Below, in pieces: positions 3,340-22,057 of a stretch of 64,000 bases of DNA. The position numbers and the translations under genes are program-made. Each line of letters opens with the position of its first letter. The stretch's first letter is position 1. Below the pieces are notes generated by a model, which was not told the DNA's origin, made no database searches, and saw only the letters and a program-made list of their open reading frames with translations. Where the stretch lies: positions 62,001 to 126,000 of the IMG/VR virus record IMGVR_UViG_3300021057_000274. One strand, 5' to 3'.

Positions 3340-3434
3340 GTGGTGAGAACGCTCTCCGTAGCGCGTTAGGAATTCCGAACTAGCTCTTCAAAAAGTAGTT
3401 TACCTTTGAAAAGAGCTGTGATATATTCTTCCTC

Positions 3435-5880: not shown

Positions 5881-5910
5881 TTTACTTTTCGCGCGATCTG
5901 TGATTAAATA
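5881..5910 (+). promoter_or_regulatory. sigma70-like early promoter (representative of recurring motif)
   Basis: TTTACT-N~17-TG.TAAAT; similar at 14, 2412, 3399, 9503, 12724, 17270, 29319, 38798. Confidence 0.6.
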
Positions 5911-5996
5911 TCTTCTACCGTAGTGCGAATCCTGGGGTCCCGGGTGGGATCGCCAGCCATCGAGACGATTTTTCAACGAACCAAGTGGAGAACGTT

Positions 5997-6335
5997 ATGA
6001 AGTCCTAGGTTTCCGAACAAAAGCACTGGACGTACTGCTTCCTCCGCGGTGATCTCCCGATCGCCCAGCAGGCGCTCCAAGCCGGACATGCTCTCCTCGA
6101 GCTCGGCATCAAGCACGGCCCGTCGCCCGACGGTCATCCCAGCATCATCTTCCTGGACACAAAGGACAAGCAAGAGCTCGAAGCTGCTCTCGACTTGACG
6201 CGCTCTCACGGGCTCAAGACGTACGAGTTCCACGAGCCGTACAAGAACTGGGGCCTCACGTCGTTCGCGACGCAACCGATTCCGGAAGATCAGCGTCACC
6301 TCTTCAAGCAGTTCAACCTCTGGAGGAAGTCATGA
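5997..6335 (+). CDS. Pth2-like peptidyl-tRNA hydrolase with in-frame TAG at codon 4
   Basis: GGAG RBS, ATG AAG TCC TAG then 108 sense codons; RGDL..QQALQAGHA and EP...LTSFATQP motifs; missed by ORF track. Confidence 0.7.
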
Positions 6336-6478
6336 ACCAGCAGCTCAAGGATAAGCTCGTCGAGTTTCTCGAGTACGCAGCTCAGCGAGAGGAGGACTCG
6401 GACCAAACCAGTGATCACTACGTCAAGTGGGCGCGAGAGCTCGCCGACGAGGTCAAGAGGGAGAAGCTCGATGCGTAA
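6332..6478 (+). CDS. small hypothetical protein
   Basis: ATGA overlap, GGAGG RBS, 48 aa. Confidence 0.6.
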   Translation: MNQQLKDKLVEFLEYAAQREEDSDQTSDHYVKWARELADEVKREKLDA

Positions 6479-6746
6479 GGAGATGACCGAGCTGGAGCTC
6501 AAGTTCGGCTTTGAGCTCGCATGCGAGCTCAAGGAGATCGTGAAGGCGTACGCGAGAGAGCACAAGCCGGCTGACGTCTGGCATCGCCCCTTCGAGGGCG
6601 AGCCCTCACAGGTCGACTTTGACGGAGGGCTAGTCAACGTTAAGTTCAGCCGCTACATCATGGGCTGCAACGAGTACGAGCACCAGGAGTGCTCGTACGG
6701 CGTCGATGACATCATCGAGTGGTACTTCTGGGGGAGCCATGGGTGA
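6471..6746 (+). CDS. hypothetical protein
   Basis: ORF overlapping upstream stop. Confidence 0.65.
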   Translation: MRKEMTELELKFGFELACELKEIVKAYAREHKPADVWHRPFEGEPSQVDFDGGLVNVKFSRYIMGCNEYEHQECSYGVDDIIEWYFWGSHG

Positions 6747-6855
6747 CTTCTCGCGTTGTCCTCACGACGACTTTCTAGGTTACTGCAAGCAGTGCAACCC
6801 TAACCTTTGCCAGGAGTGCTACATGCAACCGTGTGAGTGTGAAGTTCCGCCGTAG
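6739..6855 (+). CDS. Cys-rich 38-aa peptide, in frame with downstream HD gene across TAG
   Basis: GGAG RBS; 7 Cys; TAG at 6853-6855. Confidence 0.55.
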   Translation: MGDFSRCPHDDFLGYCKQCNPNLCQECYMQPCECEVPP

Positions 6856-6882
6856 GTTTCCCTCGATCAGCTGATCGAGCAG

Positions 6883-7482
6883 ATGAAGACGTGCGAGCAG
6901 GCCCGCGGCCTCTCGATCTACCAGCACGGCCTCGACGTGGCCAACCGCTATCGTGACCTCTACGAGTACCTCGAGACAGGAAAGACCGTCTACAAGTGGG
7001 ACATTCCCGAGGAGTCACTTCTCGAGACTCCCGTTCTCTACCGGGTGGCCCTCCCGCCCAAGGACGTGCGCACGTACCACATCTTCCATGATTGCGGCAA
7101 GCCCTACTGTCTAACGATCGACGCTGATGGGAAGAAGCACTTTCCGAACCACGCCGCCGAATCGGCTCGGGTGTTCCGAGAGCTGTTTATCGAGAATCGG
7201 GAGTTCGACGCGACTAAGGACTCTGGATTGCTGCTCATGACCGAGCAGCTCATCAAGCTCGACATGTGGGCGCACACTTGTCGCGGCGAGGAGATCACCG
7301 AGTTTTGCAAGCATCCGCTGGCGCCGACGCTCCTCCTGACGGCTTGGGCCGAGATCCACGCGAACGCCGAGATGTTCGGTGGCTTCGAGTCCACCTCGTT
7401 CAAGATCAAGAGGAAACACCTGGCCAAGGTCACCAGGCGATTGCACGCTTACCTGTGCGAGCAATTAGAGCTACCGAAATAG
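6883..7482 (+). CDS. HD-domain phosphohydrolase-like protein
   Basis: QHGLDV...FHDCGKP...HAAES. Confidence 0.7.
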   Translation: MKTCEQARGLSIYQHGLDVANRYRDLYEYLETGKTVYKWDIPEESLLETPVLYRVALPPKDVRTYHIFHDCGKPYCLTIDADGKKHFPNHAAESARVFRELFIENREFDATKDSGLLLMTEQLIKLDMWAHTCRGEEITEFCKHPLAPTLLLTAWAEIHANAEMFGGFESTSFKIKRKHLAKVTRRLHAYLCEQLELPK

Positions 7483-7495: not shown

Positions 7496-8278
7496 TCAGA
7501 ACGGAATGTCCTCAAGTTCAGGCTCCTCACGCCGAGGAGCCTGACGTTGCTTTCTCTTGTAGCTGGGACCAGAGGTAAACTCAGGAAAGTCATCAAGATC
7601 AAGCTCCGCGCGCATGAAGCGGTCATGTACTTGCTGCGGAGTTTCGCCGACCCAGACCGGGTCGATGATCACGATCGTGCCGTCATCTCGCATCATGAAG
7701 TTATCCTCCTTGATGTCAGGCGACCAATCGACGTGGAGGCTGATCTCCATGTACGCCTTGCAGAGCGACTTAAACCAAGGTACCCGGTCGAACAGCTCTC
7801 GCTGCTGGATCTTCATGACAGATCCGTCAGGCATGCGGTACTCGATCTTCGGAGCTTCACGATCTAGCTCATCTTTGCCGTGCTCCATGCGGTTGAGCAA
7901 GCTAGACGCGTTCTCGAGATAGTCCGCGATGAAGCGAGCGATCTCGGCGTGAAGCTCTTTGAGCTTCTCGACCTTGATTACCCATAGAAAGTCCTTGCCT
8001 GAGTCCTCGCGAGTGTGAAACTTGTGAAGCTTCAACGGCCGCTTGACAATTTTCGGGTAGTGCTTGCTAGGATGCTTGATGACGAAATCAATAAAGTCAA
8101 GATAGGCCGGATCGTTCTCGATGATCTTGATCACGTAAGGCCACCTGTCGTGAGTGAAGACCTGTCCATACTCTCCGCTCCCGACGAACTTGATCCCGAA
8201 GCGTCTCGCCATCTTGATGAGATCGCCCGTGCTCTTTCCGTGGAAGCGCTTGACGCCGATGAGCTCATTGAGAAGCAT
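7496..8278 (-). CDS. protein kinase-like fold protein
   Basis: GSGEYGQV Gly loop, VIK, DIKEDN catalytic loop, IIDP; TAAATA upstream. Confidence 0.75.
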   Translation of the reverse strand: MLLNELIGVKRFHGKSTGDLIKMARRFGIKFVGSGEYGQVFTHDRWPYVIKIIENDPAYLDFIDFVIKHPSKHYPKIVKRPLKLHKFHTREDSGKDFLWVIKVEKLKELHAEIARFIADYLENASSLLNRMEHGKDELDREAPKIEYRMPDGSVMKIQQRELFDRVPWFKSLCKAYMEISLHVDWSPDIKEDNFMMRDDGTIVIIDPVWVGETPQQVHDRFMRAELDLDDFPEFTSGPSYKRKQRQAPRREEPELEDIPF

Positions 8279-8320
8279 GACAATATTTAAGCGTGTCAGA
8301 TCTTGTGTTATGATCACGAG

Positions 8321-8911: not shown

Positions 8912-9048
8912 CGTAGTACGTCGACATTCATAAGAAGGATAAGATCGACCTCGTCACTAACATGATCAAGCATTGCAAGGTGCCACACGAGCTAGCGATC
9001 AAGATGCTAGAATACATGAACGCCCGACTCGGCTAGGTAAATAGCCTC

Positions 9049-9565: not shown

Positions 9566-9643
9566 AGCGGAGTGGAGCAGCCCGGTAGCTCGTTGGCCTC
9601 ATAAGCCAAAGGTCGTTGGTTCGAATCCAACCTCACGCAACCA
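9566..9643 (+). tRNA. tRNA-Met(CAU), initiator-like 1:72 mismatch
   Basis: Cloverleaf, loop CTCATAA, CCA; bulge in acceptor stem. Confidence 0.8.
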
Positions 9644-9762
9644 GCTCAGCACCTTCCCCGAGGTGCAAAGCTAACTAGCGGTGGATCGCTAGCACAATCT
9701 GAAAAATCAGTCGTTTCTCCACCTAAGCACAAACGACCGTCGGACGCTGTAACCGACATTTT

Positions 9763-9836
9763 GCGGGTGTGGTACAATGGTAGCATGCAACCTTGCCAAG
9801 GTTGAGACGAGGGTTCGATTCCCTTCACCCGCTCCA
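9763..9836 (+). tRNA. tRNA-Gly(GCC)
   Basis: Cloverleaf, loop TTGCCAA, U73, CCA. Confidence 0.95.
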
Positions 9837-9899
9837 GTAGGTAGTTGTAAAAGGTCGACCGCCCACATGGGGCGGCGGATTTGAAGGTACCTACGCAGT

Positions 9900-9970
9900 G
9901 CGGGTGTAGCTCAATGGTAGAGCAACTGCCTTCCAAGCAGAAGACGGGGGTCCGATTCCCCTCACCCGCT
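9900..9970 (+). tRNA. tRNA-Gly(UCC), no genomic CCA
   Basis: Cloverleaf, loop CTTCCAA. Confidence 0.9.
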
Positions 9971-9972
9971 CC

Positions 9973-10046
9973 GAGGTTGTCGTCTAAGTGAAGACGCTGG
10001 GGCCCCAAAATCTCCAGAAACGGTGGTTCAAACCCATCCGACCTCG
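9973..10046 (+). ncRNA. tRNA-like RNA with 11-nt anticodon loop
   Basis: gaggttg/cgacctc acceptor, D and T arms; loop GCCCCAAAATC. Confidence 0.6.
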
Positions 10047-10171
10047 CCGATGCTGGAGTTCAAACGCGAAGCCGGTTTCCGGAGCTAGCTCAACCTGAAC
10101 TCGCAGCAGAAGCATCACAGGGTTGGGGGTTTCGCGGACCTCTGTGTTTCAAGAGCTTTGCTGATGCGTCT

Positions 10172-10247
10172 GGGGAAGTAGCTCAGCTGGGAGAGCGCAA
10201 CGTTCGCAACGTTGAGGTCGAGGGTTCGATCCCCTTCTTCTCCACCA
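10172..10247 (+). tRNA. tRNA-Ala(CGC)
   Basis: Cloverleaf, G3-U70, CCA. Confidence 0.95.
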
Positions 10248-10302
10248 CGTTAGTCCCGTAACTAGTACTCGGGACAGTGATCGGTGAGACTCCGATCAAG
10301 TT

Positions 10303-10378
10303 GGGGCCTTAGCTCAGCTGGGAGAGCGTATGCATGGCATGCATAAGGTCAAGGGTTCGATCCCCTTAGGCTCCACCA
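10303..10378 (+). tRNA. tRNA-Ala(GGC)
   Basis: Cloverleaf, G3-U70, loop ATGGCAT. Confidence 0.95.
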
Positions 10379-10506
10379 ATCGCGCACTGAGCGGAGACGC
10401 TTGGGGCGAAAGAGGGTTCAAAGCTGGTGCTGAGAAGTCGGGGTAAGAGCTAACGCCCAACCCGAGAACCTCAGGATGATGCTCGCTTTGATTGCGTTAG
10501 CACCAA

Positions 10507-10581
10507 GCGGAATTAGTTCAGTGGCTAGAACGAGAGCTTCCCAAGCTCAAGACGCGGGTCCGATTCCCGCATTCCGCTCCA
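10507..10581 (+). tRNA. tRNA-Gly(CCC)
   Basis: Cloverleaf, loop TTCCCAA, CCA. Confidence 0.95.
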
Positions 10582-10683
10582 GCGGGGTCGAGAAGTGGAG
10601 AACTAGGAAGAAATTCTGAGGTTCGCATCTCACTGGCCTCATAAGCCAGACAAGGCAGCGTTCAAATCCTGCCCCCGCAACCA
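10582..10683 (+). tRNA. tRNA-Met(CAU)-like with enlarged D loop
   Basis: gcgggg/ccccgc acceptor, CTCATAA loop, CCA; D stem gaga/tctc encloses ~34 nt. Confidence 0.65.
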
Positions 10684-10759
10684 GTAGAAGCCCGCAACGG
10701 GTCTACGCCAACCGGCTTTAAGAAGAAAGGCTGTTAGCCGGTCAGCCTCAAGGAGCAGT

Positions 10760-11587
10760 ATGATGTACAACAACAAGCTCGCCGTGGCGATCCTCAATAA
10801 CGGCCAGGTGTTGCGCGAACGCGGCGACACCGTCTACCTCCCCTTTGGTTCAGAGTACGCCATCCGCGTCAAGAACCTCAACACGACCAAGGCATCGGTC
10901 AAGGTTGAGATCGACGGCAAGGAGGCGACCGAGGGAGTAGCGCTCATCATCGACCCTAACGAGAGCTTCGACCTCGAGCGCTTCATCAAGAACGGCAACC
11001 TCAACCAGGGAAACCGCTTCAAGTTCATCCAGCGCACCGCGGCAGTCGCGAGGCATCGCGGCGTCAGCATCGACGACGGGCTGATCCGCGTCACGTTCCA
11101 GTTCGAGCGTCCCTACGTGCGCCCGAGCACGTGGCCATGGGTTGAACGTCGACGCAGCAGCTGGACTCTCGGCGGCACTCCCTACGGCAGGCGCTCCACC
11201 GACAACGGGAGAAGCTCTTGGACCGCAGGAGGTCTCGGATCAAGCGGGAGCTCTTACAGCGCTAGCGCCTCTAACTCCGTGCTTCGGTCGAAGTCATCAA
11301 CTGTCTACGACGGTGACGCGCAGTGCTCGCTAGAACCAGATCCGGTCGGAGTCACAGCGGCTGGAAGCGTCTCTGACCAGCAGTTTCAAGTCGTCAGCTC
11401 TCTCAATCTCGATCCTCAAGAGCACGTCATGGTGCTCCGCTTGCTCGGAGAGTCCGCCGAGACGAAGATCAAGGTGACGAAGCCGCTGACGGTCAAGTCG
11501 AAGCCCAAGTGCTCCTCGTGCGGCTTGAAGTGCAAGTCGTCCTGGAGATCTTGTCCGCGATGCAGCACTAGCCTCGAGATCGTCTAG
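10760..11587 (+). CDS. hypothetical protein with C-terminal zinc ribbon
   Basis: GGAG RBS; CSSC..CPRC. Confidence 0.8.
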   Translation: MMYNNKLAVAILNNGQVLRERGDTVYLPFGSEYAIRVKNLNTTKASVKVEIDGKEATEGVALIIDPNESFDLERFIKNGNLNQGNRFKFIQRTAAVARHRGVSIDDGLIRVTFQFERPYVRPSTWPWVERRRSSWTLGGTPYGRRSTDNGRSSWTAGGLGSSGSSYSASASNSVLRSKSSTVYDGDAQCSLEPDPVGVTAAGSVSDQQFQVVSSLNLDPQEHVMVLRLLGESAETKIKVTKPLTVKSKPKCSSCGLKCKSSWRSCPRCSTSLEIV

Positions 11588-11985
11588 TGGGAAGCCGAAG
11601 CCAGCGGCGACGCGATCGCCTCGGAATCCGGGCGACCGGACACACTCCTGAGGGAAAGCAGGTCATGGGCGGGATGTTCAAGCTCGTCAACGAGCACGGC
11701 GTGCCGCTCTCGATCCTGCTCTTCAAGCTTGACGAGAGCGGTTGCGTTCTAGACTGGCAAGACTTCGTGCAAGACGCTCTAGAAGCAGGTTGGACGATCA
11801 AGGGTCTCACCTCACGGGTTGAGGAAGCTCTGATCGACAGCTCGTACAACAAGATCTCGCGTGACGAGATCTTGAGCAGGTTGAAGTTACTCGTCGTAAA
11901 GCTCTACGCCGAGACACAAGAAAGTGAAAAATTCCATGCCAAAGCGCATAAACATCAAGCCGGTCAAGAAGACCAAAACTCCTAA
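11587..11985 (+). CDS. hypothetical protein with AlaRS-helical-domain-like motif
   Basis: FKLVNEHGVPL..E..LD...F resembles AlaRS FRLYDTYGFP motif. Confidence 0.5.
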   Translation: MGSRSQRRRDRLGIRATGHTPEGKQVMGGMFKLVNEHGVPLSILLFKLDESGCVLDWQDFVQDALEAGWTIKGLTSRVEEALIDSSYNKISRDEILSRLKLLVVKLYAETQESEKFHAKAHKHQAGQEDQNS

Positions 11986-12679
11986 GCTCACTCGCATCCT
12001 CTTCGTTCTCGACGAGTCGACCTCGATGGGATCGGTTCGCAACGAGACGATCGCAGGTTTCAACACCTTCCTCGAGGAGCAAAAGAAGATCAAGGGGAAG
12101 GCGACGATGACCCTAGTCAAGTTCAGCTCGGCCCCAAAGATGGTCTTCTCGAACGTTCCGATCGAGCACGTCCAACCGCTCGATCACACGACGTTCACCC
12201 CAAACGGATGGACGGCGCTCTACGACGCGGTCGGCGATGCGATCACGAGCTGCGGTGACCTCAAGCCGAAGGGCGTCAAGACGATCCTCGCGATCCTGAC
12301 CGACGGCGAGGAGAACAAGAGCTATCGCTTCTCGTTCGAGCGCATCACGGCGATGCTCAAGGAGTGCCAGGGCAACCCGAGCGAGCCCTGCGCAGATGAC
12401 TGGGAGGTGCTCTACCTCGGGTCACAGATGGGTGCGCGCCAAACCGCGATCGACATGGGCATCAAGCTCCAGAACGTCGCCGCGTTCGACGTCGGCGCCA
12501 AGGGCATGTCCGACGCGATCAAGACGATGTCGGCGACGGCCTCGTCCTACCGCGGAATCGACCAGAACATCGGTGGAGTCTTCTACGCCGCCGGCGCGGT
12601 AGACACCCAAGCGATGTACGAGACGATCAAGAAGGAGATCACGACCACAACCGTAACGACGAAGAAGGCCGACAAGTAA
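11936..12679 (+). CDS. von Willebrand factor A domain protein
   Basis: LDESTSM MIDAS, TALYDA, TDGEEN. Confidence 0.9.
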   Translation: MPKRINIKPVKKTKTPKLTRILFVLDESTSMGSVRNETIAGFNTFLEEQKKIKGKATMTLVKFSSAPKMVFSNVPIEHVQPLDHTTFTPNGWTALYDAVGDAITSCGDLKPKGVKTILAILTDGEENKSYRFSFERITAMLKECQGNPSEPCADDWEVLYLGSQMGARQTAIDMGIKLQNVAAFDVGAKGMSDAIKTMSATASSYRGIDQNIGGVFYAAGAVDTQAMYETIKKEITTTTVTTKKADK

Positions 12680-12687
12680 CGAAAGCT

Positions 12688-12715
12688 TTCGGGGAGGCTC
12701 GCGAGCCTCCCCGAA
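12688..12715. terminator. GC-rich hairpin, probable terminator
   Basis: 13-bp perfect inverted repeat after vWA stop. Confidence 0.55.
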
Positions 12716-12757
12716 GCCCGCGGTTTACCTCTCGCGTCTCTCATGATATAATTTCTC

Positions 12758-13708
12758 ATGAGCAATTCCTACAACCTTCAATTTCAGAAGGATCGGACCT
12801 TTCTCAAGGCCTACATGTTGGGGAGAGGATACTCCCTCGGGCTCAAGGCTCTCGGCTTCTCAGAGCGACACCACACCGGACTCAGGAAGGACAAGCAGAC
12901 CCCGGAGTTTCATCACCAGGTTCAGATCGCTCTCTCGGTTCTCGATCTCAAGGGGCTCATCAACGAGGAGCTCGCGATCGTCATCGCTCTCCTCCATGAC
13001 GTTCAGGAGGATCACCGCGTTCCGACCGAGGCGATCCGCCGCGAGTTTGGCGACGATGTCGCCTCCGTCAACTGGAAGATGACCAAGAAGTTTGTCGAGA
13101 CCGACGGCACGCTCACGGTCAAGGACAGAGAAGCTTACATCATCGATCTCTCACTTGACGCGACTGGTTCGATCGTCAAGGGGCTTGACCGAGTCAACAA
13201 TCTTCAGACGATGATCGGCGTCTTCACCGTCGAGAAGATGCAGAGCTACGCCGACGAGGCGGAGACGATCTTCCTCCCGATGCTGAAGAAGGCGTCGAAG
13301 CACTTCCCCGAACAACATCACGCGTATCAGGCCGTGCAGCAAACGATGAAGCGCCAGCTCAAGTGGATTCGCGCTTACATCGACTTGCACCAGCGCCTCG
13401 AAGCTCACATCGATCATGTCGAGATGGAGCACGAGGCAACGATCGTAGAGCGAAACGCGGCGCTAAAGACGAACGCTGATTTGCGTCACTTCACAGAAAC
13501 TCTTCAAGAGAAAAATCGAGGACTCGCAGAGATTGCCGCCAAAGGGGTGACGGAAATAAACCGCGCGCTGATTCGTGCCGTTGCTAAAGCGCTTCTCGAG
13601 AACCGCGTGACAGGTGACAAGCATGACAGCGTCTTACAGCGTCTTGCATGGCGTCATGCGCGAGCTGGGCATCTCCGAGCTCGAGATGATCCAATTTCGC
13701 GACGATAA
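12758..13708 (+). CDS. HD-domain (p)ppGpp hydrolase-like (RelA/SpoT HD) protein with coiled-coil tail
   Basis: H.G.RK...P..H, LLHDVQED, K..DRVNN; possible indel near 13645. Confidence 0.8.
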   Translation: MSNSYNLQFQKDRTFLKAYMLGRGYSLGLKALGFSERHHTGLRKDKQTPEFHHQVQIALSVLDLKGLINEELAIVIALLHDVQEDHRVPTEAIRREFGDDVASVNWKMTKKFVETDGTLTVKDREAYIIDLSLDATGSIVKGLDRVNNLQTMIGVFTVEKMQSYADEAETIFLPMLKKASKHFPEQHHAYQAVQQTMKRQLKWIRAYIDLHQRLEAHIDHVEMEHEATIVERNAALKTNADLRHFTETLQEKNRGLAEIAAKGVTEINRALIRAVAKALLENRVTGDKHDSVLQRLAWRHARAGHLRARDDPISRR

Positions 13709-13800
13709 GGTGAGCGGAGACATCAACCAGACCTAACTTTCCTATCTCCCAGCGGCGGCCAGGTTAAATAAGAGGGCCAACTAAAGCTCGGAGATGTGAA

Positions 13801-14208
13801 TTGAAGCTAAACGAACTTAAGGCCGCGATGATCCAGCGGTTCTTTAAGAGCACCAACGGTCTAGGTGACGATCGTCTCGACGAGATCCTAGGGTCTCTAG
13901 GGACCGCGATCACAGAGGAGATCGACAGCTTCTTGACCGTTGGAAGCTCCGAGTCGCATGAGGCTAGCAAAGCCTTCAGTCGATTCATCTCGGGTGACCG
14001 GGCCTTCCTCACCGTCTGCGAGGAGGAGGGCCACAAGAACAAGATCTTCTTCGCGGCGCTCAGGTCAGGAAAGAAGATCTCCTACGTCGACCTGTCGGAC
14101 GGTGAGATCAAGGTTGAGCTAGGTACCTTCGCGCAGATCAAGGAAGCTCTCAAGCAAGCTCAAGCGCTCAACGACGACATCTTCTTTGAGATCGCGGTCG
14201 AGGGATGA
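13801..14208 (+). CDS. hypothetical, putative virion internal protein
   Basis: TAAATA 13765; MKLNEL. Confidence 0.7.
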   Translation: MKLNELKAAMIQRFFKSTNGLGDDRLDEILGSLGTAITEEIDSFLTVGSSESHEASKAFSRFISGDRAFLTVCEEEGHKNKIFFAALRSGKKISYVDLSDGEIKVELGTFAQIKEALKQAQALNDDIFFEIAVEG

Positions 14209-15635
14209 GGATCACCGAGGTTTACCGGCGCAAGACTACCCCCGAGGGGTGGATCGAGATCGGCGAGATCGGCCGGACGATCTTTGGTCAACAAAATCAG
14301 TACTTCGCTCGATACTTCGAGATGCCCGAGATCGTCAAGGACCTGCGGGTGAACGGCGACCCCGCCGACTATCACAGCTGGTCGATCCACCCCGACGACA
14401 AGGACAAGTTCGTTGAGCGCGTGAGAGAGCATTCAAAGAGCAAGGGACTAGCTGAAGCCGACACCCCACCTTCACCCAAGCCGGAAGATCCAGTCAAGCA
14501 GGAGATCAAAGCTGAGGTTACTAAGCGAACGGGGTCGGCGCGCACCAACTTTGCTCAAGAGTACCAGCGACGCTCCGCTCGCCAGGCAGAGATCAACGAG
14601 CTGAGCAAGCAAGGCACCTCCGAGCTCAACATCAAGGAGGCGATCATCAAGATCGCCGAGGACGATAACAAGGCCTACCCCCAGTTTCACGGCAAGTGGA
14701 AGGGCAAGGACTGGCGCGTGATGCGGTGCAACCACCGCGTCAAGACGAAGGGTTACCCAGCCGCCGAGAGGGGGGACCTCGTGCTAGCCAAGAAGGAGCC
14801 TGCGCAGGAGCACGAAAAGCACAAGGGCGACGAGCGTGTCACCTTCTACTCGATCCGGAACGCCGTTGACACGATCAGCATGAAGGCTAAGTCATTCGTG
14901 CCGCTCTCTACCGTGACAGAGAGTAAGACTGAGATCAAGAAGCTCTTTAAGAAGGGTGGCTTCTTAAAGTGGAACAACATCACGAACAAAGAAGCTCGCG
15001 AAGCAGGAATCGCACCTAACGACCTAGTACCTGCGACTTTGAATCAAACTTACGACAAGAAGATCTTGGGGCTTCGCATCGACGGACGGCCTTATCTTCT
15101 CAACGAGGGTCATCCCGGCTTCGACAGCTACTACACGGTGCGACGTGCAGGAGGCTATGAGGAGTACGAGGTCGCGAAGTTCTCGGACCGCAAGGAGCCT
15201 GAGTACGTCGAGTGGGTCAAGAAGAAGGACGACAAGAACTTTGAGTCATCCTCTCACAGCTTCCGCAAGATGGGGCAGCTTGACAAGTCGATCGTCATCG
15301 TCAAGCAGTTCATCGCGGACGGTGAGCCTGACCTCGTCTACTACACCGTCGAGGAGAAGCCAAAGCGTCACGCGGTGAAGCACAAGATGGGCGGCGAGGG
15401 CCCGCAGCCAGACATGTTCTCAGAGGGAAGGTTGGGAGATCTTCAGGCAGAGCTCACTAGACTGAAGGTACCTAGCTTTCACATGAACGCCGTCATGAAC
15501 GCGGCGACGCAAGCCTCCTCCTACACCGATTTCGTCAGCATGCTCAGAAAACGCGAGCTTCTCCTGAAGCACGGCAACGAGGGGATGGAGGAGATCTACC
15601 GCACCGTACGCTCGATGATGAAGAGGACCTCATGA
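14205..15635 (+). CDS. hypothetical, putative virion internal protein
   Basis: 476-aa ORF, MRITE start, coupled. Confidence 0.8.
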   Translation: MRITEVYRRKTTPEGWIEIGEIGRTIFGQQNQYFARYFEMPEIVKDLRVNGDPADYHSWSIHPDDKDKFVERVREHSKSKGLAEADTPPSPKPEDPVKQEIKAEVTKRTGSARTNFAQEYQRRSARQAEINELSKQGTSELNIKEAIIKIAEDDNKAYPQFHGKWKGKDWRVMRCNHRVKTKGYPAAERGDLVLAKKEPAQEHEKHKGDERVTFYSIRNAVDTISMKAKSFVPLSTVTESKTEIKKLFKKGGFLKWNNITNKEAREAGIAPNDLVPATLNQTYDKKILGLRIDGRPYLLNEGHPGFDSYYTVRRAGGYEEYEVAKFSDRKEPEYVEWVKKKDDKNFESSSHSFRKMGQLDKSIVIVKQFIADGEPDLVYYTVEEKPKRHAVKHKMGGEGPQPDMFSEGRLGDLQAELTRLKVPSFHMNAVMNAATQASSYTDFVSMLRKRELLLKHGNEGMEEIYRTVRSMMKRTS

Positions 15636-16138
15636 AGCTTAAGACTGTCTTGACCGAAGCCCCGAAGTGGACAAAGCACCCGACTCGCAAGGGGGTACTG
15701 ACTCGCACGATCTCACCTGAAGAGCGGAAGCGTGAGGAGGAAAAGGAATCTGCTCCCAAGAAGAGCGCGAGCAACGAGCAGAAGTGGCTCCAACCGATTC
15801 CTGAGCTGGACGTCTCGGAGATCAAGAAGGCGTGCAAGAACGGAGGTAATGACATCGGCGCCGAGATCGAGGAGGCCACGCGAGGGCAATCCTTCGTCAA
15901 GGAGGTCACGTACGATCCTGAGCACATCGGGGTCCCTGAAGCGAAGCGGAAGTATAAGTTCAAGAGTGACAGCGACATGCCGAAGCGCAAGGTCGCAGCC
16001 GTCAAGTATGACCTCTTCGTCTACTACGACGCGAAGGAAGCTGGGATCGAGACCGACGCCGATCACGTCGAAGAGATGGTGAAGATCATCATCTATCGTG
16101 ATCCGATTAACCCGAAGCGCTTGATCGGAACGTACTAA
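15632..16138 (+). CDS. hypothetical, putative virion internal protein
   Basis: MKLKTVLTE start. Confidence 0.75.
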   Translation: MKLKTVLTEAPKWTKHPTRKGVLTRTISPEERKREEEKESAPKKSASNEQKWLQPIPELDVSEIKKACKNGGNDIGAEIEEATRGQSFVKEVTYDPEHIGVPEAKRKYKFKSDSDMPKRKVAAVKYDLFVYYDAKEAGIETDADHVEEMVKIIIYRDPINPKRLIGTY

Positions 16139-16139
16139 G

Positions 16140-16697
16140 TTGAAGTTCAAAGCTTTTCTCGCTGAGTCGGTCACCTTCGGCGCGACGATCCATCGCGTAG
16201 AGAAGGACGGGCAGCGCTCGCATGACTTCACTCCGTTCGAGAAGGAGAAGGAGATCGACTGTCGTGAGTGCCACTACCACGGCAAGTCCGAGCACTGCTG
16301 GATGTGCAAGGGAACGGGAAAGGAGAAGGTTTGGGTGACCGACTACGACAAGATTCAGCTCTCAAACTCGGGCGCGCTCGCCTTCTTGAGCGCGATCGGT
16401 GAGAAGGTCAACGGCGACGAGAGCTTAGTCGGCGGGTGGGATAACTCGGAGCTCCCTGAGCTCCGACGGAGGCTCATTCGGATGAAGAACGGCGACCTAA
16501 AGCACCATGAGACGCCACCGAGCGATGAGCAGCGCGTCCGCGGGGTCAAGCATGACGGAAACGTAGCGACGATCGAGCGCGGCCCTCGCATGATCAGTTA
16601 CGGACGAACCGCCGCACAGTACGGCGAGCTGATCGACGACTTGCTCAAGCTCATCGACTTCGCTCAGAAGCACGACGCAGGAGTGAGCTGGGCATGA
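16140..16697 (+). CDS. hypothetical with CxxC..CxxCxGxG zinc finger
   Basis: MKFKAFLAE start; CREC..CWMCKGTG. Confidence 0.75.
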   Translation: MKFKAFLAESVTFGATIHRVEKDGQRSHDFTPFEKEKEIDCRECHYHGKSEHCWMCKGTGKEKVWVTDYDKIQLSNSGALAFLSAIGEKVNGDESLVGGWDNSELPELRRRLIRMKNGDLKHHETPPSDEQRVRGVKHDGNVATIERGPRMISYGRTAAQYGELIDDLLKLIDFAQKHDAGVSWA

Positions 16698-17263
16698 AGA
16701 TCATCGAGCTCGTCGAGGGCGAGGTCATCAACATCGAGGACAAGCTTACCAAGAAGGTCAGGTCAGAATTTCGTGACAAGCTCAGCAAGATTGCCGACGA
16801 CTTGCCTCGCGCTTTCAAGCAGCAAAAGGACCAGGAGAACTGGCTCTCAGACGAGCTCAAGCGAATCAAGGAGATTCCGAACAAGGAGTTCGGAAAGGCC
16901 GAGCTCATGAAGGTGCGTCCGCTCTTCAAAGATCGCGTCGGTGGCTTCCAGATCACCGACGCGATCGTCAGCAACATGCATCGCCTCGAGTGGATCAGAG
17001 ACGGCGAGGAGTACGATAACTCGGCGACCGGCGAGACCAAGGAAGAGTTTGAGCTCGCCAAGAGGTACTTCAGTGAGAACCACGAGAAGCTCATTCAAGT
17101 TCTTCAGAAGCAGATCGACGAGCTGCGAAAGCTCGCCGAGGAAGCTCGCAAGCTGAAGTGGTACGCGCCGTGGGAGCGCTACTCGATGTACGGGTACGAC
17201 CTTCATCAGTACAAGCGTGACCTGGAGTCCCTCAAGCAGTTCAAGAAAGCGTTAAAGCTCTAA
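16694..17263 (+). CDS. hypothetical, putative virion internal protein
   Basis: MKIIELVE start. Confidence 0.75.
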   Translation: MKIIELVEGEVINIEDKLTKKVRSEFRDKLSKIADDLPRAFKQQKDQENWLSDELKRIKEIPNKEFGKAELMKVRPLFKDRVGGFQITDAIVSNMHRLEWIRDGEEYDNSATGETKEEFELAKRYFSENHEKLIQVLQKQIDELRKLAEEARKLKWYAPWERYSMYGYDLHQYKRDLESLKQFKKALKL

Positions 17264-17325
17264 ATTTCATTTACTTTTGAGTGATTTTGAGTTAAAATGC
17301 CTCTATTGCTACTTCGGAGGCGAAC

Positions 17326-17805
17326 GTGGCGCAAGTCTTTGACCTGAATGAGCTTCTTCACGAGGACGCGCTGCCTTGTAGCTTCGCGTATCTCGACATC
17401 GACGAGCTTCAGATGACGGTCGGGGACTTCTTCTCACGCAACTACGCTCGCGACCTGGTCAACTTCACCCCGATCGACTACCCGGGCTCGCAGCACAAGC
17501 GCGTGCTTCAAGCGTTTCTCCTGCGTCAGCCGATTCCCCGTTTCATCCTCGCCAACAATGACTCTAGCGGCGCCCTGAAGATTCTCAAGGGCCACGCGAT
17601 CATCGAGGCGATGGAGTACGTCTATCGCAATTACAAGAGCACCGACAGAGCGCTCGCCCGCCGTGTCCTGACCTCGATGATCACCTTCACGATCGTTCGT
17701 CGACACAGCGAAGCTCACAAACCCTTCGGTCGATTCGGTATCGACAACGAGACGCTCTACCTGAACTTCCTCAAGTTTCTCGACGCGTGCAACGAGTCGC
17801 GCTGA
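17326..17805 (+). CDS. hypothetical, weak DUF262/ParB-like
   Basis: LL..PIP.F.L segment; GGAGG RBS; early promoter upstream. Confidence 0.5.
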   Translation: MAQVFDLNELLHEDALPCSFAYLDIDELQMTVGDFFSRNYARDLVNFTPIDYPGSQHKRVLQAFLLRQPIPRFILANNDSSGALKILKGHAIIEAMEYVYRNYKSTDRALARRVLTSMITFTIVRRHSEAHKPFGRFGIDNETLYLNFLKFLDACNESR

Positions 17806-17987
17806 GTCTCGTCGCTCTCTGCCTCACAGGATGCGCCTCGGTCTGCCCTGAAGACACCCAGCGCCACGTCATCGCGAAGACGGTCGGCGGGCTCACCCAG
17901 TACTCGGTACCTTATGTCAGCCGAATGCCGGTACCGGTCTACGCGGAAATTCCAGTCACCGTCAGCGTCTGCCGCCCGGTCGAGTAG
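17787..17987 (+). CDS. small putative lipoprotein
   Basis: Hydrophobic N-terminus with LTGC lipobox. Confidence 0.55.
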   Translation: MQRVALSLVALCLTGCASVCPEDTQRHVIAKTVGGLTQYSVPYVSRMPVPVYAEIPVTVSVCRPVE

Positions 17988-18049
17988 TTCACAAGAACTA
18001 ACGGCAGTGTTTACAAGCTACTAGATTCCGATTACAATTACTCCAAGTT

Positions 18050-18422
18050 GCACGGAGGTCCGCAAGGCTCAAGTCGGACTAGGCAGGCCCCACAAGGGTC
18101 GAACAGCAGTTCGAGCCTCCCACGCAACCCAGTTACGAAGGTTCTCCGGGTGGACTCCGGGGAAGAGATCGCAGTATAACGCCAGACCCTGTCGGTTAAG
18201 AGCCAGGGACCAACCGGTGAGACCGTGGACGCCGAGAGGCAGAGGTCAAGTCCGGGAACCCCGCAGGGCGGACTGGGTATAGCGGCCGATCGTAACGCTC
18301 TGTGGAATTCGTTTTGGATCCGCGGCTGGTGCAGTACGCAGTTCGCCACTACGCGCTGAGGTACCGAGGTGAAGAGGCTCCAGATAGACGGCCGTCTAGC
18401 TGGAGCGGATAGGGTCCAAAAC
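18050..18422 (+). ncRNA. unassigned ~370-nt structured RNA
   Basis: TTTACA-N17-TACAAT promoter; multiple nested stems, GNRA loops; no credible ORF. Confidence 0.55.
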
Positions 18423-18532
18423 AAATTGCACAAAGTTGTTTACAAGCGAGGGAGACTGTGATACCATCGCTCTTCGAGTTGCACATGATTAACCTTTTCG
18501 GAAAATTGAGCACCGGTATAAATACCAGCACA

Positions 18533-18655
18533 ATGAGAACCTCCTTTACAAAACCAGCGCAAATTAGGACCGCCGCCGGCGAGCATCGAGAGACGATGCA
18601 GCCGTGCGTCAATCCTGATACGCGCTCCTCGATCGGAGGCGGAAGCTCAAACTAA
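18533..18655 (+). CDS. 40-aa putative leader peptide
   Basis: Follows TATAAATA 18517; overlaps antiterminator arm. Confidence 0.5.
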   Translation: MRTSFTKPAQIRTAAGEHRETMQPCVNPDTRSSIGGGSSN

Positions 18656-18718
18656 CGAGATCTTCCGCTAAGGCAGCACCCGGTCGAGGGGTCCAGAGAT
18701 GGACCCCTCATTCGTTTT
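18625..18718 (+). promoter_or_regulatory. attenuator (antiterminator/terminator pair) upstream of main tRNA array
   Basis: 18625-36 pairs 12 bp with 18680-91, which overlaps terminator stem 18686-94/18701-09 plus U-rich tail. Confidence 0.65.
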
Positions 18719-18748
18719 GGAGTCAAGCGGTTGAAGTTGTAGCACGAT

Positions 18749-18824
18749 GCGCCTGTAGCTCAGTGGAGAGAGTGCCGCGCTACGAACGCGGAGGTCGGGG
18801 GTTCGATCCCCTCCAGGCGTGCCA
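18749..18824 (+). tRNA. tRNA-Arg(ACG)
   Basis: Cloverleaf, CCA. Confidence 0.95.
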
Positions 18825-19028
18825 GAGGTTAAGTCGATGACCTCGATGTAACACCTAGAAGTCGACAACGCCGGTGAATCAGGGCGTGGGGAACCAAGTA
18901 CTGGTTGGATGCTGAAATGAAGCCGCGGTTTTACCCTTAAGCGCGGTGGATGACTGAGAAAGGGCGCTGTAGCCGGTCTAGCATGGGTGTCGAAGTCGAC
19001 TCCCCCTCGATCGGAGCGGTGACAAGAT

Positions 19029-19100
19029 ACGCCCGCCGATGGATTTTCGGCGCCAGGTCTTCTAAACCAGGATAGGAGGGTTCGATTCCTTCCGGGCGTG
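19029..19100 (+). tRNA. tRNA-Arg(UCU), no genomic CCA
   Basis: Loop CTTCTAA; A-A mismatch in anticodon stem. Confidence 0.75.
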
Positions 19101-19103
19101 CCT

Positions 19104-19177
19104 TCCCACATAGCTCAATGGTAGAGCCGCTGGTTGTGAACCAGATTGCCCGGGTCCGATTCCCGGTGTGGGACCCA
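19104..19177 (+). tRNA. tRNA-His(GUG)
   Basis: Loop TTGTGAA, C73, CCA. Confidence 0.9.
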
Positions 19178-19193
19178 GTAGTTGCAGTTCAAT

Positions 19194-19286
19194 TCCTCGG
19201 TACTCTAACGGTAAGAGACCTGGCTGTTAACCAGACGTATCCCGCCACCGAGCGGTATGGAGGTTCGAGTCCTCCCTGAGGAGCCA
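19194..19286 (+). tRNA. tRNA-Asn(GUU) with long variable region
   Basis: Loop CTGTTAA, G73, ~23-nt variable region. Confidence 0.85.
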
Positions 19287-19289
19287 AAT

Positions 19290-19364
19290 GGGTGCGTAGC
19301 TCAGTGGTAGAGCGGGAACCTGTTAAGTTCCGGGTCGAAGGTTTGATTCCTTCCGTGCCCTCCA
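19290..19364 (+). tRNA. tRNA-Asn(GUU)
   Basis: Loop CTGTTAA, CCA. Confidence 0.85.
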
Positions 19365-19375
19365 CAATTCAGTAA

Positions 19376-19441
19376 CCGGGAAGTCCTAGTGACGTATTGC
19401 CGCGGCTGCCATCGTTGGCACGTAGGCTAGGACTTCCCGGT
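19376..19441. repeat. 15-bp perfect inverted repeat hairpin
   Basis: accgggaagtcctag/ctaggacttcccggt. Confidence 0.8.
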
Positions 19442-19455
19442 AGAAGTACAACATT

Positions 19456-19530
19456 GGCTCATTGATGAATGGGTTATCATACTACCCTGTCACGGTAGGT
19501 TAGCGGGTTCGAGTCCCGCATGGGTCGCCA
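19456..19530 (+). tRNA. tRNA-Asp(GUC)
   Basis: Loop CTGTCAC, G73, CCA. Confidence 0.95.
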
Positions 19531-19534
19531 AAAT

Positions 19535-19615
19535 GCGCTTCGGGAGGTTGAATCTCAACAGGTCGGGTCGCTCCCGTCTGTAAAACATGGGTTAAATTCC
19601 TGTGGAAGCGCGCCA
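19535..19615 (+). ncRNA. tRNA-like RNA with non-canonical core
   Basis: gcgcttc/gaagcgc-G-CCA, degenerate T arm, no normal anticodon arm. Confidence 0.55.
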
Positions 19616-19660
19616 AAATTAGAGGCTGACGATTCTGGGCGGCAATCTAGAGTCGGCGGT

Positions 19661-19767
19661 TTGTCGTTGAGGGTGGCTCCTCAGGACCCCGAGTAGGACG
19701 GTGAGATCTTGCCGGATCGAGCCGTTTGAAACGGGTCCTGTCGGTGGTTCGATTCCACCACGACTTC
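19661..19767 (+). ncRNA. tRNA-like RNA with expanded anticodon arm
   Basis: gtcgt/acgac, D-like hairpin, ggaccc/gggtcc enclosing ~45 nt, canonical T arm. Confidence 0.5.
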
Positions 19768-19954
19768 ACTCTAACCCTCTTCATGAAGCTGTGGGTAGAT
19801 CACCCTGCCACAAATCGGGTGATGAGGTCCGATCGCCTTCGTCCGTGGCATGCATGGCGCCAGGGCGATACCCCAGCAGTAACTGCGGCCGTCACCGAAC
19901 TTTATGCGAGAAAGTTCAGCGGTGACGAGGAGGAGGCGAACTGCTCGTTCAGTT

Positions 19955-20029
19955 GTCCCATTCGTCTAGTGGCTAGGACACAACCCTTTCAAGGTTGAGA
20001 ACGGGGATCGAAACCCCGATGGGACACCA
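19955..20029 (+). tRNA. tRNA-Glu(UUC)
   Basis: Loop CTTTCAA, CCA. Confidence 0.95.
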
Positions 20030-20033
20030 CTAT

Positions 20034-20109
20034 CTGGGTGTAGGTCAGCGGCGAGACTGCCTGGTCCGGAGCCAGGAGGCCGTGGGTTCGAGTCCCACCA
20101 CCCAGACCA
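20034..20109 (+). tRNA. tRNA-Pro(CGG), C33
   Basis: C1-G72, A73; loop TCCGGAG. Confidence 0.9.
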
Positions 20110-20149
20110 AAGCGGCCCCCAGCGCCGCTCTAAGCCGAGGCTGGGGCAT

Positions 20150-20225
20150 CGGAGAGTCGCCTAGCGGCTATGGCGCCTGCTTTGGGAGCAGGATACCGTG
20201 GGTTCGAGTCCCACCTTTCCGACCA
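20150..20225 (+). tRNA. tRNA-Pro(UGG)
   Basis: Loop TTTGGGA, CCA. Confidence 0.95.
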
Positions 20226-20235
20226 ACACATCAAT

Positions 20236-20310
20236 CGCTTCTTGGCGGCAAGCTGCCGTGCTCCCACTAGAAGGGAGAGCGAGGAGGTTCACGCCCTCCA
20301 GGAGCGACCA
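20236..20310 (+). tRNA. atypical tRNA, UAG anticodon (Leu-like) without long arm
   Basis: Full cloverleaf plus CCA; loop ACTAGAA; D loop lacks GG; T loop TTCACGC. Confidence 0.55.
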
Positions 20311-20311
20311 C

Positions 20312-20385
20312 GGGTCCGTAGTTCAATGGTAGAATGTTACCTCGACACGGTAGAGACGAAGGTTCGATTCCTTCTGGACCCACCA
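20312..20385 (+). tRNA. tRNA-Val(GAC), C33
   Basis: Loop TCGACAC, CCA. Confidence 0.9.
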
Positions 20386-20391
20386 AAATTT

Positions 20392-20465
20392 GGGCTACAA
20401 GCTTTAAGGTGAAGCATCTGGCTCTTACCCAGAAGAACGGGGATCATTACCCCGGTAGCCCACCA
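20392..20465 (+). tRNA. tRNA-Lys(CUU)
   Basis: Loop CTCTTAC, CCA. Confidence 0.9.
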
Positions 20466-20468
20466 GCA

Positions 20469-20617
20469 TTCGGTAGTGACCTAACGTTCAGGACGAAAGG
20501 AATCGTGCGGTCGCCCTAGTACCAGCTCTGGGTGACTAAACGGAGTCGAGTAGGCCTGCTCGCAAAAGGGATCGGTCAGGGACTGGTACTCCAGAGGTTC
20601 GACTCCTCCTACCGGAC
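20469..20617 (+). ncRNA. 149-nt tRNA-like RNA with expanded D and anticodon arms
   Basis: ttcggtag/ctaccgga, agtaccag/ctggtact, GG-TTCGACT-CC T arm. Confidence 0.55.
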
Positions 20618-20625
20618 TAAACTAG

Positions 20626-20702
20626 GGTTCTTTAGCTCAGATGCGTAGAGCGCCGAGCTTACACCTCGGATGTCGGGGGTTCAAGTCCCTCAGGAACCAC
20701 CA
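20626..20702 (+). tRNA. tRNA-Val(UAC)
   Basis: Loop CTTACAC, CCA. Confidence 0.95.
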
Positions 20703-20704
20703 AT

Positions 20705-20780
20705 GGCGATGTGGTGAACTGGCTATCACGCGGCTCTCATAAGGCTGAGTAGACGGGATCGAAACCCTCCATCGCTACCA
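20705..20780 (+). tRNA. tRNA-Met or Ile2 (CAU)
   Basis: Loop CTCATAA, CCA; identity not resolvable by eye. Confidence 0.9.
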
Positions 20781-20881
20781 TTCTAGGAAGTTGGGACTGC
20801 TCAAGCGGACGGAGTCCGGTAGCCCTCGCGGGGAGACCAATGAGTTGTGGTTCGATTCAACGCCTAGCTTTTATTGCGCTT

Positions 20882-20956
20882 CCCTCATTCGTCTAATGGT
20901 CAGGGCCCGTGCTTGATAGGCGCGTGACGGTGGTTCGATTCCATCATGAGGGACCA
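20882..20956 (+). tRNA. tRNA-Ile(GAU)
   Basis: Loop TTGATAG, CCA. Confidence 0.9.
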
Positions 20957-21046
20957 ACAGCAGCCGAGAAGCAGGCCCGTCGGTCGGTTAGAGAGCCTTC
21001 CGCACGTGCGCTCCGTGAAGCCACGGCAAACGGACTGCTGCATTAT

Positions 21047-21121
21047 CAGGGTGTAGCTCAGTGGGAGAGTGCTACGTCGGGAACGTAGAGGCCGCAGGTT
21101 CAATCCCTGCCACCCTGACCA
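21047..21121 (+). tRNA. tRNA-Pro(GGG), C33
   Basis: C1-G72, A73; loop TCGGGAA. Confidence 0.9.
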
Positions 21122-21224
21122 ATAGCTGGCTTGCAAGTGACGAGAGGTCATCATGCTTCGGAGCGCACGCTGGGGATAAGCTCCCAGCGCAGCGACCTAG
21201 ACGGCAAGCTGGCGGGCCTTATTT

Positions 21225-21295
21225 CAGAGCGTAGCGTAGTGGTAGCGTACCTGGCCTGGAACCAGGAGGTGTTGGTTCGATTCCAGCCGCTCTGA
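21225..21295 (+). tRNA. tRNA-Pro(UGG), C33, no genomic CCA
   Basis: C1-G72, A73; loop CCTGGAA. Confidence 0.85.
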
Positions 21296-21297
21296 CC

Positions 21298-21385
21298 GGG
21301 GGAAGATGTAGGTTCGAATCCTATCCAATGGCCATAAGCCCGTGAGGGTGGCTGGCAGGTAGCTCAACCGGCAGAGCAGCTCCCC
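21298..21385 (+). ncRNA. circularly permuted tRNA-like RNA (T arm before D arm; YrlA-like topology)
   Basis: GTAGG-TTCGAAT-CCTAT precedes TAGCTC-AACCGGCA-GAGC; ends gggga/tcccc pair. Confidence 0.6.
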
Positions 21386-21391
21386 TTTCTG

Positions 21392-21467
21392 GTACATTAG
21401 CTCATGGGGTTAGAGCGCGCGCCCGATAAGCGCGGGGTGGAAGGTTCGAGTCCTTCATGTACCACCA
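21392..21467 (+). tRNA. tRNA-Ile(GAU), C33
   Basis: Loop CCGATAA, CCA. Confidence 0.9.
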
Positions 21468-21600
21468 GACAACACCGTTGCTTCTCACCGAGAGAAGCCA
21501 GCTAGCAAGCGAAGCAGACATTCGTCTAGATCACTGCGACTGGACCCGGAATCCCTCGCGTGGTGGCCGATTGTCGGCTAGGACGGATTCGTTGTCTACT

Positions 21601-21774: not shown

Positions 21775-21778
21775 AACT

Positions 21779-21849: not shown

Positions 21850-21863
21850 CCCACAGATAGGAG

Positions 21864-22052: not shown

Positions 22053-22057
22053 GCTGT

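Follow-up and report, generated by a model that had tools for sequence, protein, structure and literature searches.

The analyzed stretch of DNA, hereafter the window, spans 64 kb of the 389-kb viral contig IMGVR_UViG_3300021057_000274, for which a megablast search of the region recovered no match among GenBank phages. Near its start lie two conserved genes, one encoding a protein with a predicted Pth2 fold and one encoding an HD-like phosphohydrolase, each of which has a ribosome-binding site, an ATG, a few sense codons, and an in-frame TAG ahead of its conserved body, and the window also encodes a tRNA with the anticodon CUA 55 kb from the first of these early stops (Table 1). The initial annotation had described the first gene as a Pth2-like reading frame interrupted by an amber codon at codon 4, with a GGAG Shine-Dalgarno (SD) sequence, 108 sense codons after the stop, no alternative start before the conserved region, and a CUA tRNA in the same genome, and every one of these elements is present in the sequence. 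The first in-frame ATG, GTG, or TTG after the stop is TTG 6195, which lies 63 codons downstream and past the conserved N-terminal motifs, and a codon-usage model trained on the long ORFs of the window scored the stretch after the TAG as strongly coding. The initial annotation did not note that a second gene of the same operon carries the same type of early stop, that the arrangement is widespread, or that the catalytic Lys of Pth2 is replaced by an invariant Gln.

Table 1. Features of the putative operon and of the suppressor tRNA region, in window coordinates.
Feature	Coordinates	Strand	Remarks
Promoter-like motif GATCTGTGATTAAAT	5895-5909	+	Extended -10 type; function inferred
Shine-Dalgarno GGAG	5987-5990	+	6 nt before ATG 5997
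Leader ATG AAG TCC (Met-Lys-Ser)	5997-6005	+	Three codons
First gate codon TAG	6006-6008	+	Followed by GTT TCC
Body of the predicted Pth2-fold protein	6009-6335	+	108 codons plus TGA stop (6333-6335)
Small ORF between the gated genes	6332-6478		Only self-hits
Small ORF between the gated genes	6471-6746		Only self-hits
Cys-rich ORF	6706-6855		49 codons; coding status doubtful; only self-hits
Shine-Dalgarno AGGAG	6812-6816	+	6 nt before ATG 6823
Leader of the second gene (ATG CAA to CCG CCG)	6823-6852	+	Ten codons, in frame within the Cys-rich ORF
Second gate codon TAG	6853-6855	+	Followed by GTT TCC
Body of the HD-like phosphohydrolase (phrog_14850)	6856-7482	+	Ends in TAG (7480-7482)
Terminator-like hairpin	7518-7544	+	11-bp stem with 7 GC pairs; consensus match only
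CCA-adding-enzyme head domain	56929-58035		Without an HD domain
Promoter-like motif GATCTGTGATATAAT	61151-61165	+	Ahead of the suppressor tRNA
Suppressor tRNA, anticodon CUA	61181-61255	+	75 nt; CCA encoded; anticodon loop CU-CUA-AA

The resemblance of the first gene to Pth2 is weak at the level of sequence and strong at the level of predicted structure. The 108-residue body alone had no Pfam hit at E up to 1, no useful PDB sequence match, and only weak PHROG matches. When an alignment of 39 family members was used instead, 30 of the 39 hit PF01981 (PTH2; best E 1.2e-6), and the five best PDB hits of the family profile were archaeal Pth2 (E 0.015-0.1). The AlphaFold2 (AF2) model is confident (pLDDT 92.3, pTM 0.85), and the top 12 Foldseek PDB hits, and 13 of the top 14, are Pth2 family structures, including 1wn2, 1q7s, 2zv3, 1rlk, 1xty, and 3erj, with TM of 0.66-0.77 and a probability of 1.0 among the 12 with E at or below 0.001. 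The residues D15, P17, Q20, Q24, H27, L57, E76, and P77 are invariant. The active site differs from that of Pth2, however, as in the HMMER alignments to 24bt and 2zv3 the Lys of the G-K motif, which is probably the catalytic residue (Lys18 in the Sulfolobus enzyme), aligns after a 2-residue insert with Q20, which is invariant in all 39 relatives, and the Asp of the D-A-G-x-T motif of 2zv3 aligns with E76, which is followed by P77 and a mostly conserved D78, with a nearly invariant T84. Hydrolase activity is therefore plausible but unproven.

The early stop is conserved. A tblastn search with the body found 25 GenBank phage records, all from large phages of Acinetobacter, Ralstonia, Yersinia, Serratia, Erwinia, Pectobacterium, Cronobacter, Xanthomonas, Salmonella, and Stenotrophomonas, in most of which the gene is unannotated or truncated. 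The six records that were read, which are of 35-42% identity, all begin with an ATG, one or two further codons, and TAG: ME3 (ATG ACT TAG), RsoM2USA (ATG TTG TAG), fHe-Yen9-03 (ATG TCT CAC TAG), BF (ATG ACG CAC TAG), Arash (ATG CTG TAG), and CBB (ATG GCA CAA TAG). Of 49 IMG/VR loci (individual loci, from this and other sets, are designated below by L-numbers), 43 have a start codon, 0-4 further sense codons, and a TAG placed 7-15 codons before an R-x-D-[LI]-P motif, three have TGA at that place, one (L018) has the TAG plus a 1-nt frameshift just after it, and two, the most distant members (L049 and L053), have ordinary starts. A start codon followed by 0-8 further sense codons and a stop precedes the domain in 46 of 49 IMG/VR loci, in all 79 analyzable metagenome loci (77 TAG, 2 TAA), and in 7 isolated phages, as well as in three of four MAG contigs. 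These four contigs were the only ones returned by a scan of bacterial and archaeal genomes, so the family is essentially viral. The IMG/VR, JGI, and GenBank sets overlap and the counts are not independent, yet the codons flanking the stop vary freely, with 20 different codons preceding it, and the conservation of the stop in almost every relative examined is far beyond chance. The possibility that the TAG marks a pseudogene or an assembly error, which a single window from a single assembly and the frameshift in L018 might have suggested, is effectively refuted by the recurrence of the same feature in well over a hundred loci from independent samples and in isolated phages with finished genomes, and by the clear purifying selection on the body, which retains eight invariant residues at 26-67% identity.

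The identity of the stop covaries with the anticodon of the neighboring suppressor tRNA. Thirty-five TAG-gated IMG/VR loci have a tRNA(CUA) gene within 10 kb on the same strand, in places only 50-120 nt upstream of the gate, and none has another suppressor type as its only one, whereas the three TGA-gated loci (L026, L040, and L044) have tRNA(UCA) and no CUA. On a maximum-likelihood tree of the proteins the TGA tips lie inside TAG clades, and well-supported branches force at least two independent switches. One TAG-gated locus (L193) has a tRNA(UUA), which by wobble can also read UAG. Nine TAG-gated IMG/VR loci show no CUA tRNA within 10 kb, although for most of these the rest of the contig could not be read. 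Thirty-four of 48 suppressor anticodon loops are CU-CUA-AA, as in the window. An attempt to name the amino acid carried by the suppressor by finding a parent isoacceptor among co-resident tRNAs allowed no call, as the best identities (0.65-0.79) went to different isotypes, and the window tRNA has no close isoacceptor among the other 40 tRNAs that ARAGORN found in the window. The 'Pyl' label given by ARAGORN reflects only the anticodon: the tRNA has a D-loop with GG, the T-loop GGTTCGAATCC, and a 5-nt variable loop, which is not the tRNA-Pyl architecture, and although pyl genes were not searched for, no structured element follows the TAG, as Rfam and RNA folding around the gate gave no family hit and z = -1.57, with no SECIS- or PYLIS-like element.

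These patterns bear directly on the two mechanisms put forward in the initial annotation, which had inferred readthrough-controlled expression either through the phage suppressor tRNA or by sensing a shortage of RF1. The first is strongly supported. The second, a release-factor sensor in which readthrough by near-cognate host tRNAs rises when RF1 or RF2 is scarce, could draw on the constant competition between termination and decoding, on the tendency of very short ORFs such as minigenes to terminate poorly, and on the nine gated loci without a suppressor within 10 kb. It is nonetheless disfavored as the main mechanism and we regard it as unlikely, as the stop tracks the anticodon of the adjacent phage tRNA, gates of TAG, TGA (read by RF2), and TAA (read by both factors) all exist, such that no single release factor is being sensed, and the two ungated members lack a nearby suppressor. 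Competition with release factors must still set the efficiency.

The second gene has homologues in the same phages and lies directly downstream of the Pth2-like gene in 32 of 49 IMG/VR loci; in the window the two are separated by two small ORFs that, like the Cys-rich ORF, gave only self-hits when tested for conservation. Homology begins at the first residue after TAG 6853, upstream of the first ATG at 6883, and the codon-usage score upstream of this TAG is negative. The 9-mer TAGGTTTCC is found at both gates and nowhere else in the window on either strand. In 13 other IMG/VR loci the second gene starts with ATG, 1-3 codons, and TAG, in L026, whose tRNAs are UCA, it starts with ATG ACA TGG TCG TGA, and in locus L230 both genes are gated by TAA; no genome was seen in which the two gates use different stops. 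In the Rak2-like clade (BF, CBB, GAP32, Yen9-03, and relatives) the second gene has an ordinary start but carries an in-frame TAG near codon 42, in a predicted loop. In Tenacibaculum phage pT24 the Pth2-like and HD domains are fused in one ORF behind a single ATG AAA TAG, and that phage has a CUA-type tRNA elsewhere.

The protein encoded by the second gene matches phrog_14850 (E 1.9e-53) and has invariant H24, H78-D79, K82, H99, D136, and H140 in 21 relatives, which include the H...HD...D metal-binding residues of HD-domain phosphohydrolases. The Pfam HD model (PF01966) scored below its cut-off (E 0.025; 15.3 bits against 22), and although the AF2 model is confident (pLDDT 94.4), Foldseek returned no significant PDB match, its best hits being HD proteins with E above 0.1 and TM of about 0.45. 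The family profile hit the 285-385 region of a class II A-adding enzyme at E 0.0017.

A further alternative is that the stop ends a regulatory leader peptide and the protein begins downstream, either by non-canonical initiation or by reinitiation. Some relatives have ATT or ATC, which are weak start codons, right after the stop, L046 has ATG directly after its TAG, and the second gene has a conserved Met 9-12 codons after the gate (6883 in the window) that could give an N-terminally shortened product without readthrough. Against this, the codon after the stop is usually AAC, AAT, GTT, or ACC, which cannot initiate, the SD of the first gene is spaced for the upstream ATG (6 nt, compared with 18 nt from GTT 6009), the stop type would not need to covary with a tRNA anticodon, and the residues between the gate and the downstream Met of the second gene are conserved as protein. 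We consider this explanation improbable. Ribosome hopping between the two TCC codons that flank TAG GTT at the first gate was also rejected, as matching take-off and landing codons are absent at the second gate and in relatives.

To evaluate how specific the architecture is, we scanned 952 kb (48 loci plus the window, both strands) for an SD, an ATG, at most 10 codons, a stop, and then at least 80 codons with no start in the first 8. The scan found 48 TAG cases, of which 31 are Pth2-like, 13 are HD, and 4 are singletons, 15 TGA cases that formed no recurrent family and include both L026 genes, and 8 TAA cases that were unrelated singletons. A gated 157-codon ORF in L033 was tested as a divergent HD protein using hhalign, with a negative result. 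The base following 46 gate stops is A in 32, G in 12, C in 2, and T in 0, which agrees with nonsense suppression probably working best before a purine, whereas 8 of the 14 terminal TAGs of the window are followed by T. Genome-wide reassignment of TAG to a sense codon (code 15), as in crAss-like and Lak phages, might be suggested by the CUA tRNA and the 41 tRNAs of the window, but is very unlikely: the 68 putative genes of the window end in TGA (34), TAA (20), or TAG (14), only three TAGs have coding signal on both sides, treating TAG as sense does not lengthen the longest ORFs, and the scan found only singletons outside the two families.

The operon and the suppressor tRNA may share a promoter class. 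The near-identical promoter-like 15-mers that precede them are the only two exact matches in the window to the pattern GATCTGTGATWWAAT, and four matches with up to 2 mismatches were found against 0.19 expected. Around the suppressor tRNA lie the CCA-adding-enzyme head domain, a P-loop AAA_28 protein, a weak 2H-phosphoesterase match directly downstream of the tRNA, and a macro-domain protein, which together look like an RNA-repair neighborhood.

Taken together, the early in-frame stop is conserved and selected, is specific to two linked genes, and changes together with the anticodon of the adjacent suppressor tRNA and together between the two genes. The gate sits where any amino acid should be tolerated, in the N-terminal tail before strand 1 or in a loop. 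The simplest mechanism, which we favor with high confidence although it rests on comparison and not on proteomic, Ribo-seq, or reporter evidence of readthrough, is a translational AND gate: ribosomes that start at ATG 5997 or ATG 6823 make only a tiny peptide unless the UAG is decoded by the phage's own tRNA(CUA), and the full-length proteins therefore appear only when that tRNA has been transcribed, processed, and charged. We infer that both products act on tRNA 3' ends, through ester hydrolysis and end healing, and three purposes would fit: a coherent feed-forward delay in which the same promoter class drives both tRNA and mRNA, damage control for the consequences of suppression (phage tmRNA genes lie 1.5-4 kb upstream in seven related loci), or feedback on the suppressor's own charging and 3' end. 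Five Gln-type Pth2-like genes sit next to CUA tRNAs yet have ordinary starts; the gate is therefore not obligatory for the association, which argues against a pure timer and points to a functional tie between enzyme and tRNA beyond expression control. A more speculative and doubtful possibility is that the suppressor tRNA serves as a sentinel whose charged state sets the synthesis of enzymes that act on tRNA 3' ends including its own (deacylation or de-peptidylation by the Gln-type Pth2 fold, end healing by the HD protein), resulting in a self-adjusting controller of tRNA-end chemistry during infection, comparable in logic to prfB but built from a tRNA-gene pair, or alternatively that the gate is a licensing checkpoint that lets the phage deploy tRNA-directed enzymes only once its own tRNA set works. 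The linkage of this Pth2 branch to suppressor tRNAs even where the gate is absent, the fusion in pT24, and the RNA-repair genes around the window's suppressor tRNA are compatible with this idea.

Suppressor tRNAs are common in large phages that otherwise use the standard genetic code, and their targets have been an open question. The authors of the Xanthomonas phage XacN1 genome reported that no target genes could be identified for its two CUA tRNAs (PMC5852040), and other work leaves the role open (PMC8386662). The module described here, inferred to process tRNA ends, supplies a conserved, testable target whose start is blocked by the very stop codon that the neighboring tRNA reads. It also explains why these genes are missing or truncated in the annotations of many jumbo phages, and reading through the stops of annotated genes, as was done for XacN1, cannot find them; the HD homologue of XacN1, ORF364, is preceded by AGGA, 8 nt, and ATG AAG TAG. 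In practice, the module offers a natural, compact, and orthogonal translational switch, a simple rule for phage annotation pipelines, and an entry point to what phage Pth2-like and HD proteins do to tRNAs during infection.

Full-text literature searches, which did not cover subscription-only papers, found no description of this arrangement, although suppressor-tRNA-dependent decoding of in-frame stops in phages is itself known. In the code 15 and code 4 crAss-like, Lak, and jumbo phages (bioRxiv 10.1101/2021.08.26.457843, PMC7886860, PMC13037316), a phage-encoded suppressor tRNA likewise reads in-frame stops in phage genes, which has been proposed as a way to delay or control expression, but there the stop is reassigned across many, mostly late, genes, whereas here the genome uses the standard code and the stop sits once, right after the start, in two specific small genes linked to the tRNA gene, with all three stop codons occurring as gates and matching anticodons seen for TAG and TGA. 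The comparative survey of jumbo phages that notes PTH2 genes (Iyer et al. 2021, PMC7824862) does not mention stop codons or suppressor tRNAs, and the present family is a separate branch in which Gln replaces the catalytic Lys; CBB carries both a Pth annotated elsewhere (CBB_392, PMC5259590) and the gated gene (CBB_406 region). In prfB (RF2) autoregulation, an early in-frame UGA also makes the synthesis of a translation-related factor depend on what happens at that stop, but prfB is bypassed by a +1 frameshift at a slippery site with an internal SD, whereas here the body is in the same frame as the ATG in all loci and no slippery motif is conserved. The lambda bar minigenes, which cause peptidyl-tRNA drop-off rescued by Pth and to which the initial annotation had drawn a parallel, share the shape of SD, ATG, 1-2 codons, and stop, with leaders here being mostly 2-3 codons including the ATG, and the downstream product has a predicted peptidyl-tRNA-hydrolase fold; bar, however, acts through a particular last codon and is toxic only when Pth is limiting, whereas here the last sense codon is not conserved and the stop is followed in frame by a conserved protein. 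Finally, in classical viral readthrough, such as that of the Qbeta A1 protein and retroviral gag-pol, an in-frame stop is likewise decoded at a set efficiency to make a longer protein, but host near-cognate tRNAs are used at the end of a functional protein to add an extension, whereas in our reading of this system nothing functional is made without readthrough and the decoder is encoded by the virus.

A third TAG within the window also has coding signal on both sides, separating a 39-codon ORF upstream from a 144-codon ORF downstream in the context TAG GTA; however, an ATG lies 5 codons after this TAG, so the two ORFs may simply be adjacent genes, and no homologues were found among the loci examined. 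The HD-like gene of the gated operon itself ends in a TAG that is followed by G, and readthrough of this codon by the same suppressor would add 31 residues before a TGA is reached. The positions of these and the other features are collected in the table below.

Coordinates of additional features in the window and in related loci
Sequence	Position	Strand	Feature
window	3413-3427, 5895-5909, 32531-32545, 61151-61165	+	Recurring promoter-like motif
window	7480-7482	+	Terminal TAG of the HD-like gene
window	7496-8317	-	Gene with a weak match to phrog_15752
window	9034-9036	+	Third TAG with coding signal on both sides
window	9570-28108	+	tRNA gene arrays
window	19194-19286		tRNA-Asn call
window	48001-52000		Low-GC island
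window	48148-50385, 50389-50937	-	Long ORFs of the low-GC island
window	56929-63263	+	RNA-repair-like neighbourhood around the suppressor tRNA
L026, L030-L033, L039, L050	1.5-4 kb upstream of the Pth2-like gene		tmRNA genes
L033	11972-12448	+	Candidate third gated family
L038	15138-15216		tRNA(UUA)
L061	2120-3073		Fused Pth2-like and HD-like ORF
L061	2255		Internal ATG at which the GenBank CDS BPT24_235 starts
L179	about 5983-6003		TAA at the gate

Forty tRNA genes in the window are organized in arrays that cover most amino acids, although none for Leu, Trp, or Tyr lies in the window, and Ser is represented only by a 73-nt Ser(UGA) call that is too short for a class II tRNA. The tRNA-Asn call is 93 nt long, which suggests an insertion or intron or a miscall. 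The suppressor tRNA is surrounded by genes resembling an RNA-repair neighbourhood, comprising a class II nucleotidyltransferase head (PolyA_pol plus RNA-binding domain, 368 aa, no HD domain), an AAA_28 P-loop protein, a weak 2H phosphoesterase match immediately after the tRNA, and a macro-domain protein. The promoter-like motif TGTGAT(A/T)(A/T)A(A/T)T recurs at four sites in the window, and the sites before the 746-aa gene and before the gated operon additionally share an upstream GTAGTTTAC(T/C)TTT element. The low-GC island (0.47-0.50 against about 0.57 elsewhere), which contains long minus-strand ORFs, may be a recent acquisition.

In the related loci, phage-encoded tmRNA genes were found just upstream of the gated module in seven cases. 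One of these loci, L033, also contains an AGGAG followed after 7 nt by ATG ACA TAG and then a 157-codon ORF with no start before codon 76; this ORF lies directly upstream of three tandem CUA tRNAs and is not an HD relative, and thus may represent a third gated family. The closest relative of the window protein (67% identity), in locus L179, uses TAA at the gate, and locus L230 uses TAA at both gates, although the predicted tRNA(UUA) is not on these short contigs. A tRNA(UUA) was detected in addition to the tRNA(CUA) on L038, an Arash-like phage contig. In five further loci (L076, L084, L097, L111, and L136), Gln-type Pth2-like genes have ordinary starts but nevertheless sit on stretches that were retrieved for a CUA-tRNA-like pattern; ARAGORN confirmed the CUA tRNA in four of them (not L111), and in L076 it starts 14 nt after the gene.

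Directly after the operon's terminator-like hairpin in the window lies a convergent gene with a weak match to the phage protein kinase family (phrog_15752, T7-like host-shutoff kinase). In Tenacibaculum phage pT24 (locus L061), the Pth2-like and HD-like domains are fused in one ORF behind ATG AAA TAG, whereas the CDS recorded in GenBank for this phage starts at an ATG inside the Pth2-like domain.
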